A DNA stretch of 64,000 bases from Octopus bimaculoides (GCF_001194135.2 NC_068984.1:88213568-88277567), one strand, 5' to 3'. Positions 30,299 to 60,376 are shown, counted from the first letter of the stretch. Notes: generated from the sequence alone by a model not told the origin. Numbers and translations: made by a program.

Positions 30299-33200
30299 AT
30301 GGCTGTGCTGAGAATAGGGTGTGTGAATGGGCGTGGTCTGGGATCAGCTTGGAAGCAAGGTCATTTGCTCAATGACCCCCCGCCCCAGGTCGCGTAATCT
30401 GGATGTGGCTGCTATTAGTAAAAGTAGAATCACCAGAAAATACGCTCTAGCATCCATTTTCGAGGACTACGGGGTATTCTCATCTTGTGCTCTATTGGAA
30501 TCGGGTGGAGGTGTAGCAGTGCTACTCCGGAAATCCTTAAATCTCCAAGTACGGGCTATCTTCCTGGACCCAGATGGTAGGTTGTGGTCCAGGACGTGAA
30601 TGGCAGCGAAGGTGGCGCCTTTAGATTGGTGGTCCCAACAGGGAGGAAGGCCAGACTTCTTTAGGCGTCTACAAATATTCTAGTGGGAGACTGGAATAGT
30701 ATTTTGGACGCACAAAAGGACTGTGAGTTTAGTACATAGTAGAAAGGAGGTGTAAAAGCCTCGAAAAATCTGCTCAGGGCTTTCCAGCTTTCTGACAAGT
30801 ACCGACTAGGTTTCTCAGATGTACCAGTGTAGACATGGAGCAACCACAGCGGGTCATCCAGATCGTATTTAGATAGAGTATTTGTTAGGTTAGAGGATAG
30901 GGATAACATAGGCTGTTCACAATTTAAAATCGTCGCCTACAGGGATCACAATTTTGTGATATGCTCAGTCGACTTAAATTGGATCCGTAGACAGGGACCC
31001 AGTAACTACAAGTTCAATGCGTCCTTAACAGCTCGCAAAATCTACAGGAACCGGATTAGTGAAATAGTTAAGCGGCAATTGACGGGGACTATCGTCAACA
31101 ACCAGAGGTGGATCGCTCTGACTGAGCGGTCGCGGTAGAATCGATTGTGTTTAGCAAGAACGAAATAGATTAGAGGGAGAACTAGTTAGCAAACTAGAGG
31201 AGGCGATTACTAAAGGCATCGCGACCGACGTGAATGGCCCTTGACTATTTCTTTGAGGCGAAACACGAAGGGTGCGTTGTCAGAGCTAAGGCCTGTGCGC
31301 TAAAACATGAAGGAACTAAAGACTTTTGATGGGCCCGGACGGTAGAGACGCCACGTGGAAACAAAACCACGTTCAAATCTTTGACGGATCAGAACGGACG
31401 CGTGCTATTCGGTTCTGAGCAGATGTGTGCAGCTTCCCAGCAGCACTTTGCGCGGCTGTTTTGGGGAGGGTGATGGGTCGACGACGGTAGCAGACATTAC
31501 TTCAAACCTAGACTGCCTACCACGGTTCTCGGTAACGGACGCGAGATTGTGCGAAAAGCCGATTACAGCCACTGAAATATGGGAGGTGATGAGTGATTGC
31601 ACAAGTCGCAAATCGTCCAGTTTGAACAGTCTGCCCTACGAATTCTATGTATTCATGCCAGATTTGTTTGGCAGCTTCTTGGCAGATGTCTACAGAACGG
31701 AAGAATTCCCAGTGCTGTTAGCTGGGGTATTGTAAAACTGCTGAGAAAAGACGTCGACAATGGGGACATGCTAGGGAATTTTTGACCCATAACTCTGCTA
31801 AACACAGAGTTTAAGACTTTGGCCAAGGTGTTAGCGAAAAGGTTGGTGCTTGTCGTTGGGGAAGCACAAACGTGTGCGAACCCGAGCAGGTCTATCCACA
31901 ACCTCCACCTTATGCGATGCATTGAAGAGAGGGCTGGGACTAAAGCTGGCTTTGATGGGGCTCTGATCGATTTAGATCAGTCGAAAGCTTTCAATAGGGT
32001 CGACCATCACTTCTTGGAATCCGTCATTAAAGTGGCTGGTTTCGGACCTGCTTTTAGAGGGTGGATTGCTGCAATGGACAGCTGCACCTGCTCAGTGTTC
32101 AAAGTAAATGGCCATCTATCGGAACCATCTAGTATCGCACGTTCAGTCCGTCAGGGCTGCCCTCTGTCACTTCGCCTGTATGTGCTGGAAGTTGAACTCG
32201 GTAGGTCAGTGTCTGCATACACGGACGACGTCACCGTCATGGTGTCGGACGCCTCGGAAGTGGAGACGGTTGGCTTCATTCTAGAAGAATATGAGTCGGT
32301 TGCAAGGATAAAATCAATGCCGACAAGTCGGTGGGATTGCGACTGGGCGCCTGGAGAGGCAGATCGATGCCGTAATGTTCGATGATCAAAGTAAATGGCC
32401 ATCTATCGGAACCGTTTAGTATTGTACATTCGCTCCGTCAGGGCTGCCCACTGTCACCTCTCCCGTATTTGCTGGCTCGTGAGCCATTGTTGCGGAAGTT
32501 GGAACAGTTAAGAGGCCATACACGGACGACCTCACCGTCATGGTGTCGGAATCCTCGGAAGTGGAGACGGTTGGCTCCATTCCAGAAGAATATGAGTCGG
32601 TTGCAGGGGCCAAAATCAACGCCGACAAGTCGGTTGGATTGCGACTGGAGATGCTGATCGATATCGTCGGACGCTGGACCGACAAATCAGTTAAACTGCT
32701 CGGGTCTAGTTTGATCCCAACCTCCAGGTGAATAAGAATTGGGAAGAGGGGACGAACAGTGTGGCCAGTCTTATCCAGAAATAGGCTGAGAGGAAGCTGT
32801 ACTAGAAAGGTCAGGCAGAGTTGGCGAATGCCTACATCGCCTCCGTTGTCATTTATCGTCTTAACGTCGTACCTTGCCCCAGTTATTGGAGCATCTTTTC
32901 TTCATATCCTTGTGGAAAGGACGCGTTCCAATGGTCAGATGATCAATCTGCTGTCAGCTCCCTCTGTGTGACGGCTTAGGCATGCTATGGCTTTTGATGC
33001 ACAGACATGTGCTCAGGTTGCGCCACCTGCAACGATGTCTAGAAGGTGAACGTTTGCGAATTACGTATTTCCGCAACTCGTCTCTGTCCTGAGATCAGTC
33101 TTGGGTGAAGGATAAACCAAGACTGGGCGTCTGGCACTTAGAATGTCATCAAGCGCTCACTGTCCTCTACCAGTCGAGCAATAGGATCGATGGATGTTCC

Positions 33201-33976: not shown

Positions 33977-34587
33977 ANNNNNNNNNNNNNNNNNNNNNNN
34001 NNNNNNNNNNNNNNNNNNNNNNNNNNNNNNNNNNNNNNNNNNNNNNNNNNNNNNNNNNNNNNNNNNNNNNNNNNNNNCAACCGAGGCTGGTGTGTTTACG
34101 TCCCCGTAACATAGCGGTTCGGCAAAAAGAGGCCGATAGAATAAGTACTAGGCCTACAAAGAATAAGCCCTGGGGTCGATTTGCTCGACTAAAAGGCGGT
34201 GCCCCAGCATGGCCGCAGTCAAATGACTGAAACAAGTAAAAGAGTAAAGAGTAAGAGAGAGAGAGTATATCACATAATATGTGGTCGTTATTTCCAATCG
34301 AGACGTTACGACCGAATCTAATTCTTCAAACGCTTTAATTCTGTATATATTCATATAATTACTTGATTGCTGACATCTATAAATGGTTTCTCTTATTATC
34401 ATAATGCCATTTTCTTTCATTAATAACTCTGTCGGCATTTTTGAAGAGACAGGTATGCTAGTTATTCGATAATTACGCAATAATATGTCATAATTAGAAA
34501 TATGTCATAAGAAATTGGAATGTAGCTTTTCACCATTTAACGTCACAAAACAGGCTAGAAGTTTCGTTAAATTTCTCAAGAATAATC

Positions 34588-35394
34588 ATGTCGTGGAAAG
34601 ATGTTCTGCATAATTTAACAGGGTTTTATGAACGAGAACAGCGGCAGAAAAAAGTAAGGAATTATTTGGAAAACCAATCATTTACTGCACAAGATCGTGA
34701 GGCAGTGATCGACTGGATGATAGCTTGTGTAGATCATTACGTAGTTTCTTTCGAAGTCTTTTATCTTGCAGTTTCTTATTTTGATATATACCTGTCTGGA
34801 AGAGACATAGAACCAATTACTTCCTCTAAGCTGCAATGTCTCGGAGCCTCATGTCTTTGGATTTCTTTTACTCGGTTAGGTCAAAACCAGGATAAACTGG
34901 CAAATTTTCTGGATATGGTATCAGTCACAGACCGGCACTCTAGTGAAAAGGACCTTTATGACATGTTTAGTCATATTATGACTCGATTCCACTACAAAAC
35001 GCATTTAATAACACCGTACAATTTTCTAACGAGCTTCTTTTTTATTCTCCATTTGGAACGTAAACACAATCTGAGATGGATGTCACGTTATATACTGGAG
35101 CTAGCGCATTACGATGCGGATATTTGTGTAAAAAATAGGTATAGACCGAGTCTAATAGCAACAGCTGCTCTTTACACAGGATTAGTAGCTTTGAGGGTCA
35201 CTGTTGATTGGATTTCTGACTTGTCTATTTTAACACCGTATACTGGAAAGGAATATGAATTTAGAATTGTTCATCGTCGGATGTTGAAATTATTAAAAGT
35301 CGCTTCTCCATCCAAATATAGGTCAGCATACACGAGATACAGCAGAAAAGAATATAATCACGTTGCTTTGGTTGATTTTTCATTTATTTATTAA
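34588..35394 (+). CDS. Intronless, divergent A/B-type cyclin-like protein (268 aa; cyclin N + C folds only)
   Basis: Cyclin-box pattern NYL..Q...DREAVIDWM (MRAIL helix), FYLAVSYFDIYL, KLQCLG, VTD, TPYNFL, YILEL, RPSLIATAAL, and a C-terminal AYTRYS...VAL. The ORF is uninterrupted, with an in-frame stop at 34495 and ATTAAA at 35434-35439. Confidence 0.85.
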   Translation: MSWKDVLHNLTGFYEREQRQKKVRNYLENQSFTAQDREAVIDWMIACVDHYVVSFEVFYLAVSYFDIYLSGRDIEPITSSKLQCLGASCLWISFTRLGQNQDKLANFLDMVSVTDRHSSEKDLYDMFSHIMTRFHYKTHLITPYNFLTSFFFILHLERKHNLRWMSRYILELAHYDADICVKNRYRPSLIATAALYTGLVALRVTVDWISDLSILTPYTGKEYEFRIVHRRMLKLLKVASPSKYRSAYTRYSRKEYNHVALVDFSFIY

Positions 35395-37079
35395 AAGTTT
35401 TCGCGTTATTTCTGTAGCTCGTATTCTAGAAATATTAAATACATAAATTGTATTACATTTTATTTATCTTATGATTTAAAACTGTTCTGACTCTCTACTT
35501 TTGGAAGTTGACACGAGTACGGCAGTGGCGTCCAGAAACTAGCTTCACAATCATGATATCTCAAGTTCAATCCTTTCTTCGTATCAAGTGCTTTTTACTA
35601 GTGCTTCAATTCGATCCGACCTTCACAGAAAAATGGGGCCGGCGAAAACTATATGGAAGTTCATTGGATACAGTGAAACCGAAAGGTGAAGCCTTGTCAC
35701 ACACTGAATCATAATTCTATCAGAATTATATTAAGAATACTTGTCTTTGGACTACTCGGCTACTTACAGAACGTTAATTATGTGACTCGATTATGTGACT
35801 CGATAGAAACTATATTGCAGGTTACTAGGAAGAGGGAAAAGCTCAAGGTGATATACTGGTGCTGTATGATTGCCTCCTTGATTTTTCGTATGCAGAAAGT
35901 GACAGAATGATAATAAGAAAGATTACTGTTACTATAAATTGTTTCTGTTAAGATAAAAATCTGGGCAAGACTTCCTTTTGTACGACCCCCCCCCCAAACA
36001 CCCCTTTTTTAAAAATTTAATTTATTTTCTACACAAACCCCTGTTTTCGGCTACGGAGAATACAAATCTGCAAAAAAAAAAATTGGCATAAATCGGCATT
36101 TTGAAATTACCCTCACCCCTAAATTCTTCATTTTTCACTTTTTCAGAAATTTTTTTTTTTTCAAAATATGCGGAAAAATATGGAGATTATGNNNNNNNNN
36201 NNNNNNNNNNNNNNNNNNNNNNNNNNNNNNNNNNNNNNNNNNNNNNNNNNNNNNNNNNNNNNNNNNNNNNNNNNNNNNNNNNNNNNNNNNNNNNNNNNNN
36301 NNNNNNNNNNNNNNNNNNNNNNNNNNNNNNNNNNNNNNNNNNNNNNNNNNNNNNNNNNNNNNNNNNNNNNNNNNNNNNNNNNNNNNNNNNNNNNNNNNNN
36401 NNNNNNNNNNNNNNNNNNNNNNNNNNNNNNNNNNNNNNNNNNNNNNNNNNNNNNNNNNNNAATGTCAAAATTCCGATTTTTGGCAATTTTCCGGAATTTC
36501 TGTATCCCAAAAAAAATTTTCGCAAAAATATTTTAAGAAAAACAATAATTTGCGAGAAAATGGAGGGGGAAGAAGTCTTTCCAAAATCTGTTAGAGAGCG
36601 CGGGAGAAGTAGCGAGACAGTTAAACAGAGAACAATTGTAGAGTTCATAAAAATAGAAGTGAGTATAGCTTTAGTTAAGCTGTACTTAAAATAACAAATG
36701 ATAGTGGTTTTTTGAACTTATTTATATTGCGTGTCAAACAATTATGAACATGAGAAAGGGTGACCCACCATTAAATCCTAAGGGTGTGCTATCTACTTCA
36801 CTGGAAGTGTCTCTTCAGCCAATTAGATCAATAACTAGTCCTTGTCCACAGTTCGTCTCTTATGAGTTCACGGGTAATGGTCTACATAGCTCCCCCTCAG
36901 AACTGTTGACTGTCATTAGAACCGATAAGGCGTTTGTACCACCCGATCCATGTATGTACTTACTTGACTCTTTGACGAATGTTTGTCATCCGGAGTCAAC
37001 GTGACTTGCTCAGGACAGCCTCCGTTTGGTGGTTGAGCTATTAGAACGGGGCTGTCAATGTTGAGATAGGCTGGTTTCA

Positions 37080-54411: not shown

Positions 54412-55496
54412 AACTTGATAAAATTAGGCTGCAGAGGCAAGTGTTTTCTATGAAACTGCAAAATCGAGACTTTCGAGACATGATATTCTTGCATTACTGT
54501 GAAGGAAAAACTATTGCTGAATCCCAAGAGGTACTTCATGAAGTATTTCAAGACCAAAGCCCCCCATATTGTACTGTTCAATTTTGGTTTAAAGAATTTG
54601 AACAAACTAATGAATGTGCGGATAGTGAAATTCTTAACACAACTGTCACCCCTCAAAACATTGAAGCAGTTAAAATGTTATTAAAAGAAGATTCTAGAGT
54701 GACTTATAAAGAGTTAGAAAGTGTATTGAATATTGGATCAGAAAGTGTTCGGTCAATCCTTCATGATTATTTATATGTTCGCAAACTAAATATGTGCTGG
54801 GTTCCTCAAATCTTAAGTGAAGAGCAGAAGTTGGCCAGAATGGAATGGTGTGAGTTTATGCTAAAAAAGTTTCAAAATGGAGCACATCAGAAAATTGAAA
54901 ATATTGTTCTTGGAGTTGAATCCCAACTTTATCAATATACTGAATCTAAAAAGCCATCTACAGTATGGACTTTCCTCGATGAAGATTACTATCTTAAATG
55001 GAAACATCCACCAAATATACAAAAAAAAACAATTGTAAATTTTTTTAGTAAATCTGGCAACCTTGCTACTATTTTACTCAAAGACAAATCCAAAGTTAAT
55101 CCTAGTTGGTATTTAACAAAATGTTTACCTGAATTATTTGAAAAGATCAAAGAAGTAAGAAAAGATTCTGGACTCCAAGGTATTCTTCTCCATCATAGTA
55201 ATATAAATGTTCTTACTGCTGCAGTGACTATGGACTGTCTTGCTGAGAATAGCATTCAATTAATTACACATCCTGCTCACAGTCCTGATTTATCTCCTTG
55301 GGATTATTTTGTATATCCTAAAGTGAAAAAAGATCTTATTGGAATTAAATTTAACAAGCCTGGAGATGCTCTTGGTGCATTTATTCAAGCTACTACATTG
55401 CTAACCCCTCAAGATTGGATTGAATGTTTTGAAAGCTGGTTTAAACATATGGAATTATGTGTGGAATCTCAAGGGAACTATTTCAAAGTAACTTGA
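54412..55496 (+). CDS. Terminal exon: catalytically degenerate mariner (DD34D) transposase-derived protein, probably domesticated
   Basis: Uninterrupted ORF with two HTH-like regions, WVPQIL (WVPHxL), HSPDLSPWDY (YSPDLAPxDY) and a C-terminal CVESQGNYF. Catalytic positions are V159, S253 and D288 (34-aa spacing). A poly(T)-CCAG| acceptor lies at 54411, the frame is open from it, and no TIRs are visible. Confidence 0.85.
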
Positions 55497-59869: not shown

Positions 59870-60376
59870 TTAACTGTTTCTTGAGACACAAGAGGTTTGG
59901 TATTTTTTCTTTTTTTTTTGTTTTGTTTTAGCAAAATCTTTTGCACCTATCAACCTACATTTCTTTATAGTTAACCTGCCTTTGATGTTGCTGCACCTCT
60001 TATGTGTCCATAGCTTGCACCGGGTACATCTTATAGAGTTACTACCTACTCCTTTTCTACATACTGAGCAGGGCCATCTACCTGAAGGGGTTTGTGTTTT
60101 ATCTACCTTCCTACTTATTAGGATTTTGGTTTTAGCTAGGTTGACTCTAAGGCCCTTCAATTCTAGACCTTGCTTCCACACCTGAAACTTCTCCTCTAGT
60201 TCTGATAGTGACTCCGCAATTAGGGCAAGGTCATCAGCATAGAGGAGCTCCCAGGGGCAACCTGTCTTGAACTCCTCTGTGATTGCCTGGAGGACTATGG
60301 TAAATAAGAGGGGGCTGAGGACGGAACCTTGGTGGACCCCTACCTCTAATATATTTGAAGCTTTAACCAGTCTCAC
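59870..60376 (-). mobile_element. RTE-clade LINE RT fragment
   Basis: VGVHQGSVLSPLLF...WELLYADDLAL...GLRVNLAKTKIL and downstream WPCSVCRKGV.SNSI.C..C..W.HKRC. Confidence 0.9.

Follow-up and report, generated by a model that had tools for sequence, protein, structure and literature searches.

The window analysed here is a stretch of 64,000 nt of Octopus bimaculoides DNA. On its plus strand, positions 34588..35394 hold a single-exon, cyclin-like coding sequence of 268 amino acids plus TAA, delimited from the list of open reading frames, Pfam matches and orthologues and assigned to type 1 of the gene family described below. Translation of 34408-34620 places an in-frame TAG (34495..34497, plus strand) 93 nt 5' of the start codon, with no ATG, GTG or TTG in frame between the two, and the intact 268-aa ORF with an upstream in-frame stop that had been predicted for this locus is thereby confirmed from ATG to TAA. 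The O. bimaculoides assembly GCA_001194135.2 carries a one-exon gene call at CM046604.1 88,248,155-88,248,961 whose protein is identical to that of the window ORF. Judged from its sequence, 34588..35394 is a real, functional single-exon gene of O. bimaculoides and a type-1 member of the family. Public protein sets already hold it as an unnamed or 'cyclin-B2-1-like' prediction; database labels for the family as a whole are 'uncharacterized' or 'cyclin-B2-1-like', the latter name being misleading, and a literature search returned no paper mentioning the octopus cyclin-like family.

Between about 28 and 48 kb, the window runs colinear with the corresponding locus of O. vulgaris. According to blastn and pairwise alignment, a colinear block at 34280..35779 (plus strand) reaches 93.9% identity and comprises the coding sequence with some 300 nt on its 5' side and some 385 nt on its 3' side, the wider flanks standing at 85-91%; this block is probably the transcription unit. 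The source annotation shows no gene call overlapping or enclosing the ORF and calls no other gene within 10 kb on either side, leaving the proposed location inside an intron of an antisense gene unsupported. A mariner-derived gene lies downstream of type 1 in both O. bimaculoides and Argonauta. Based on the O. vulgaris colinearity and this shared downstream neighbour in Argonauta, the type-1 genes are orthologues at a stable locus.

The mariner-type ORF (window 54441-55496, plus strand; Argonauta L001:18820-19857) is intact and encodes 351 aa, in which Pfam recognises HTH_48 only and no transposase catalytic domain; the region of the second catalytic Asp reads LLHHSN by eye. At 85% protein identity between O. 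bimaculoides and Argonauta, with a dN/dS of 0.08 and a dS of 0.82, it resembles a transposase gene that has been domesticated and is held by strong purifying selection, and not an active element. Fragments of reverse-transcriptase ORFs (RVT_1), remnants of retroelements, occur at 31819-32385 (plus strand) and 59870-60376 (minus strand), the second also matching a PHD/C1-like zinc finger. A SINE-like repeat of about 175 bp, partly N-masked, lies at approximately 34078-34257, 330 bp upstream of the gene, and recurs at 84-92% identity in the octopus loci L002, L003 (three times) and L011. The gene is also flanked by an inverted repeat pair (34391-34415 and 35894-35918; 25 nt, 84% complementary, 1478 nt apart), which is probably a chance occurrence in AT-rich DNA. 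A scan for bacterial promoters and terminators, whose models are unsuited to an animal genome, gave background counts only.

Both halves of the cyclin architecture are present in the encoded protein. The Pfam domains Cyclin_N (aa 13-137, 34624..34998, plus strand; 1.9e-16, 60.4 bits) and Cyclin_C (aa 141-262, 35008..35373, plus strand; 5.5e-15, 55.9 bits) were each matched by HMMER above the curated cut-offs, and they are the only domains found, with no F-box and nothing outside the cyclin folds. In the first fold, the MRAIL helix (aa 34-50) is remodelled and alpha3-alpha5 are the helices that formerly bound the CDK. The second fold is the most conserved part of the protein within the family. 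In the AlphaFold model, an N-terminal helix (aa 3-19) precedes two five-helix cyclin folds, with the helices of the first fold at 34-50, 55-69, 79-96, 101-114 and 120-133. The model was built from a 116-sequence alignment and reached a pLDDT of 95.4 and a pTM of 0.92, a confidence that stems largely from the ordinary cyclins in that alignment and that therefore confirms the fold and not the surface; five family sequences alone yielded an unusable model (pLDDT 45).

Comparison with solved structures points to cyclin A. The top 47 Foldseek matches in the PDB are all cyclin A2 (TM 0.82-0.88, rmsd about 2.4 A, over the whole length), followed by cyclin B1. Single-sequence HMMER searches against solved structures rank cyclin A2 (about 8e-14) ahead of D1 (1e-8), E1 (1e-6) and B1 (4e-6), and the family profile scores cyclin A2 at 76 bits and D3, D1, B1 and E1 at 37-48 bits. 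Outside the family, the nearest sequence matches, at 23-31% identity, are A and B cyclins from a mixture of protists, plants and insects; an assignment of the cyclin class from these neighbours was dropped, and only the PDB profile and fold rankings favour cyclin A. By descent, as profile and modelled fold have it, the protein is a cyclin of the A/B superclass that lies closest to cyclin A. The A/B-type assignment of the original prediction therefore stands, for a derived and intronless member.

The gene is one of a family. Searched exhaustively with the profile, 1.84 billion representative proteins yielded six family cluster representatives, five of them scoring 218-484 bits and the sixth, a fragment of 111 aa, 113 bits, against 93 bits or less for ordinary full-length cyclins, and no short cyclin-like animal clade was found between the family and ordinary cyclins. 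Word-indexed protein searches with single sequences or with the family profile matched only the family itself (seven octopod proteins and one ENA protein). In neighbour-joining trees on 249 columns, the family is monophyletic with 100% bootstrap support and a long stem, and type 4 is sister to a group in which type 1 branches outside types 2 and 3. At least four types can be distinguished, and all 11 genes are single-exon. So far the family has been found only in octopods and in two sources without organism assignment, which supply type 4, and a restriction to cephalopods is accordingly provisional.

A search for paralogous arrays and orthologues was rewarded on both counts. Type 1 has a syntenic orthologue in O. 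vulgaris (an intact single-exon ORF of 268 aa at L002:9797-10600, 86% identity) and another in Argonauta hians (a one-exon gene, likewise syntenic, 268 aa, 56% identity). Type 2 comprises O. bimaculoides LOC106882405, which lies on a chromosome other than that of the window gene, an intact O. vulgaris ORF (L003) and a third copy from sequencing runs. Type 3 is represented in O. bimaculoides by LOC106879796 (CM046604.1 88,135,349-88,136,122, minus strand), about 77 kb before the start of the window and thus on the same chromosome as the window gene, 112 kb away and on the opposite strand; a premature stop leaves its product 13-14 residues shorter at the C-terminus than those of the O. sinensis copies. 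The O. sinensis type-3 genes form an array of three tandem copies within 20 kb (L014:10001-30206), of which two are intact and the middle one has an internal stop. Type 4 consists of two one-exon genes of 265 aa each, 81% identical to one another and about 35% to type 1. The idea of a single retrogene thus gives way to a family of several paralogues, marked by tandem duplication and by the death of copies. Two RefSeq models of family members are wrong: the NCBI 'cyclin-B2-1-like' model for O. vulgaris type 1 is a spliced 197-aa protein with aberrant N- and C-termini that misses the intact ORF, and XP_029634929.2 of O. sinensis is one gene model chained across all three type-3 copies.

The family departs from ordinary cyclins on the face with which cyclins contact CDKs. 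HMMER alignment to cyclin A2 sets T95 (codon ACT, 34870..34872, plus strand) opposite K266 and F127 (codon TTT, 34966..34968, plus strand) opposite E295, in full agreement with the manual alignment of the original prediction and restoring neither Lys nor Glu, and Y136 occupies the position of F304. Columns were compared in a 149-sequence MAFFT alignment that included 140 ordinary cyclins, in which the K266 column is 99% Lys, the E295 column 100% Glu and the F304 column 81% conserved. Across the 11 family genes, the K266 position reads T/T/I/E/D/D/D/D/D/S/S and the E295 position F/F/L/R/R/H/Y/Y/Y/Y/Y, with Lys and Glu respectively in none of them. The F304 position holds Y, H, I, G or F, Phe being kept only in two type-4 genes. 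Also lost are E268/E269 and P272 of cyclin A2, whose columns are 86%, 91% and 90% conserved in the same 140 cyclins. The predicted loss of both residues that clamp the PSTAIRE region is therefore real, and it is an old, family-wide state and not the quirk of a single copy. Judged by the residues compared, the aligned proteins do not qualify as CDK-activating cyclins in the functional sense. Every solved CDK-cyclin pair retains the Lys/Glu pair, which forms hydrogen bonds with the loop that precedes the PSTAIRE helix (PMC3590450), and a triple-alanine change of K266, E295 and F304 has been used to stop cyclins binding CDK1 (PMC12356897).

Selection within the family has shifted in a corresponding region. 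Column entropies from equally sized samples show stronger conservation in the family than in pan-eukaryotic cyclins throughout the protein, apart from alpha3-alpha5 of the first fold. It is far more variable than pan-eukaryotic cyclins at six positions (95, 96, 105, 127, 131 and 136), all of which lie within these helices, the carriers of the CDK-contact residues, and which include the equivalents of E295 and F304. In the second cyclin fold, family entropy is 0.45-1.4 bits per site below that of ordinary cyclins. When fast-evolving positions were mapped on the structure, no clear concentration on one surface was seen.

Alternatively, the family could still bind and activate a canonical or atypical CDK by way of a reconstructed interface, and would then act as a constitutive, APC/C-insensitive cyclin of a specialised cell type. 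We regard this as rather unlikely. Such a role would fit the full two-fold architecture and the N-terminal helix, an element that in cyclin A complexes lies packed against the CDK, both of which are modelled confidently, and the recurrence of aromatic or basic residues at the E295 position (F/L/R/H/Y) may reflect a different contact. Some CDK activators, p35 and Speedy/RINGO, bind CDKs without the Lys/Glu pair, and because of them residue loss alone is not proof of CDK independence. However, the alpha3-alpha5 face is the least constrained part within the family, and the former contact positions differ among paralogues, which is unexpected for a conserved interface. The triad is, moreover, needed in every solved CDK-cyclin pair listed (PMC3590450), and its mutation served to prevent CDK binding (PMC12356897). 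Loss of the residues together with relaxed constraint on the CDK face leads us to infer that the family is CDK-independent.

A different picture emerges for the docking groove that recognises RxL motifs. In the window protein, R37 (R211 of cyclin A2), W43 (W217) and Q83 (Q254) of the hydrophobic patch are kept, as is L253, while M210 is replaced by D36, E220 by A46 and L255 by C84. These replacements are family-wide and themselves conserved (M210 to D/N, E220 to A/S, L255 to C), giving a consensus for helix alpha1 and the patch of D-R-x-x-[VLI]-[IV]-[DN]-W-M-x-[AS]-C, plus Q83-C84. The patch had been described as partly kept, which is correct for R37, W43 and Q83, but it is more altered than that description implied, with E220 changed to Ala and M210 to Asp in a family-conserved manner.

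The family has persisted for a long time. Between Octopus and Argonauta, type 1 has accumulated a dS of about 1.2 with its frame open and its length unchanged, and in a neutral simulation no ORF stayed open after 268 substitutions and 10% did after 51. A young processed pseudogene was considered and is ruled out by the frame kept intact in three species, by the dS of about 1.2 and by changes that avoid conserved sites. Rates of protein change were gauged by pairwise Nei-Gojobori estimates from few sequences. Long-range dN/dS is 0.24-0.28; at shorter range, it is 0.28 for type 2 between O. bimaculoides and O. vulgaris (dS 0.17, or 0.173 unrounded) and 0.13 for type 4 between its two sources (dS 0.77). 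For type 3, comparison of the O. bimaculoides gene with the O. sinensis copies gives 1.1-1.6. The type-1 value between O. bimaculoides and O. vulgaris is 0.97 (40 non-synonymous and 11 synonymous differences, dS 0.068), an imprecise figure because synonymous changes are few and local dS is unusually low. The dN/dS comparison that the original prediction had put forward as a check thus separates types 2 and 4 (0.13-0.28) from types 1 and 3 (about 1-1.6), and the family accordingly divides into slowly evolving types (2 and 4) and fast ones (1 and 3), which duplicate and sometimes die. Ratios of about 1 or more, together with the broken copies, are compatible with some copies drifting towards loss.

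For the window gene itself, it could be argued that type 1 was functional in the octopod ancestor and is now decaying by neutral drift in Octopus, a reading that we consider unlikely. The dN/dS of 0.97 would agree with it, as would a CDS identity between O. bimaculoides and O. vulgaris (93.7%) that equals the 94-95% of the immediate flanks, the 10% of neutral ORFs still open after 51 substitutions, and an Arg at position 117 found in O. bimaculoides alone where all other members have Pro. Against decay, only one of the 37 amino-acid differences between the two species falls at family-conserved sites where 9.9 would be expected (Fisher p = 6e-5), and neither species shows an indel or a stop. 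The ratio itself comes from 11 synonymous changes, and the synonymous divergence of type 1 (0.068) is below that of type 2 (0.173) for the same species pair, which inflates dN/dS. The core of type 1 is still constrained while the remainder changes fast.

The N-terminus of the protein is short by nature. The window protein begins at its N-terminal helix and has no disordered N-terminal region, and it therefore has no D-box or KEN degron. KEN motifs are absent from every family gene, and no RxxL is conserved among all members; in the window protein, RxxL occurs four times, always inside the folded domain. All 11 genes start at the same Met, most with an in-frame stop 2-31 codons upstream (2-12 codons 5' of the conserved Met in members other than the window gene), which makes the short N-terminus a family character and not an annotation gap. 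The absence of an N-terminal D-box/KEN tail, as originally predicted, is thus borne out by the start at the helix, the upstream stop and the lack of KEN or conserved RxxL, and the predicted proteins do not carry the degron that marks mitotic A/B cyclins.

As to origin, the family would have arisen by retroposition. A search around the ORF for a poly(A) remnant and target-site duplications found no A-tract and only chance-level short repeats, but such marks are expected to have decayed at a dS above 1. No parent gene stands out, the family being equidistant from many A and B cyclins (23-31% identity). The description as a retrogene or otherwise derived paralogue thus holds in so far as the gene is intronless and derived, while marks of retroposition were not found and the gene is not a lone copy. 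That the gene is instead an ordinary mitotic cyclin with missed N-terminal exons, or was acquired as a cyclin from a virus or a transposon, is very improbable: the surrounding repeats, the 'cyclin-B2-1-like' names that NCBI gives its relatives and the introns in one O. vulgaris and one O. sinensis RefSeq model might hint at it, but both intron models are artefacts (the former passes over the intact ORF and the latter strings three tandem copies together), the shared Met and the stops upstream of it in most genes speak against further exons, the locus is orthologous and syntenic across octopods and so not mobile, and neither the IMG/VR scan nor the fold match to viral cyclin models (TM 0.70 or less) supports a viral source.

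Several known systems resemble the octopus family in part. Cyclin A2 is its best profile and structure match and shares the N-terminal helix and two five-helix folds, along with R211, W217, Q254, the D of DRFL, the PSxxA motif and the second-fold W. Unlike cyclin A2, to which it is about 24% identical, the octopus protein is without the roughly 170-aa N-terminal regulatory region and D-box, belongs to an intronless, multi-copy family of one lineage, has lost K266, E268/E269, P272, E295 and F304, and has other residues in place of M210 and E220 of the RxL groove. Cyclin F offers a functional parallel, as it naturally lacks the K266, E295 and F304 equivalents, does not bind a CDK and has a cyclin domain that serves as a binding module (PMC12356897). 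It is, however, a large SCF substrate receptor with an F-box, whereas the octopus proteins are cyclin folds alone, and no sequence affinity of the family specifically to cyclin F was seen. CNTD1/COSA-1 are likewise small, cyclin-related, meiotic proteins, a likeness drawn from their description. In the mouse, the form of CNTD1 present in vivo binds no CDK and works in a 'cyclin-independent manner' (bioRxiv 10.1101/750596), but this short form is without the N-terminal cyclin domain, while the octopus family keeps both folds. The viral cyclins of gammaherpesviruses, giant viruses and epsilonretroviruses are similarly short, degron-less cyclin-fold proteins encoded by intronless genes. The octopus loci differ from them in being stable, syntenic host loci, and the fold match to viral cyclins is much weaker (TM 0.70 or less); in the IMG/VR scan no viral contig encoded a family relative, and the herpesviral cyclin of the CDK6 complex keeps the Lys/Glu pair (PMC3590450). 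By analogy, then, the octopus family would work most like the CDK-independent cyclin-fold proteins, cyclin F and CNTD1.

Taken together, we favour, with a probability of roughly 0.55, the reading that this is an old, cyclin-A-like and probably retroposed family whose members now serve as CDK-independent cyclin-fold binding proteins. The family most probably started when the mRNA of an A/B-type cyclin was retroposed as a 5'-truncated copy. DNA duplication would then have carried it to a second chromosome, to a position 112 kb from the window gene and into tandem arrays, and copies are still being gained and lost. The Lys/Glu/Phe triad (K266, E295, F304), which clamps the loop preceding PSTAIRE, was lost early, and selection on the CDK face relaxed thereafter. 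What selection keeps now is the remodelled alpha1 and hydrophobic-patch region and, above all, the second cyclin fold. Because selection holds these two regions, a cyclin-fold binding module is the likeliest mode of action: a constitutively present protein that would not activate a canonical CDK and that may act as an adaptor or competitor, gripping its partners through the altered docking groove and the C-terminal fold. The gene, its fold, the lost residues, the family and the pattern of selection are shown here; retroposition, stability of the protein, CDK independence and action as an adaptor or decoy are inferred.

A more specific version can be offered only tentatively, namely that these are cephalopod 'pseudo-cyclins', degron-less, CDK-independent and descended from a cyclin-A-like retrocopy, in which types 2 and 4 would perform a core function and types 1 and 3 a role in conflict or reproduction. 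That the fast members have a part in the germ line or in a conflict is a guess, prompted by the intronless genes, the tandem duplication and dN/dS values of 1 or above. Perhaps, if the pseudo-cyclin reading is true, types 1 and 3 could titrate docking-motif proteins away from mitotic cyclins in germ cells.

Cyclin-fold proteins that do not activate a CDK are few, cyclin F and in part CNTD1 being the examples, and each has taught how docking surfaces work alone. The traits that make the octopus family useful in this respect are its bare two folds, the absence of the clamping Lys and Glu, a conserved but remodelled groove, and the presence of slow and fast paralogues side by side. Its interest is moderate at present and would be higher if CDK independence and a defined partner were shown; should the family after all activate a kinase, it would reveal a novel mode of cyclin-CDK binding. 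As it stands, it may provide a compact system for asking what the cyclin fold does without a kinase, and an example of gene-family innovation in cephalopods.
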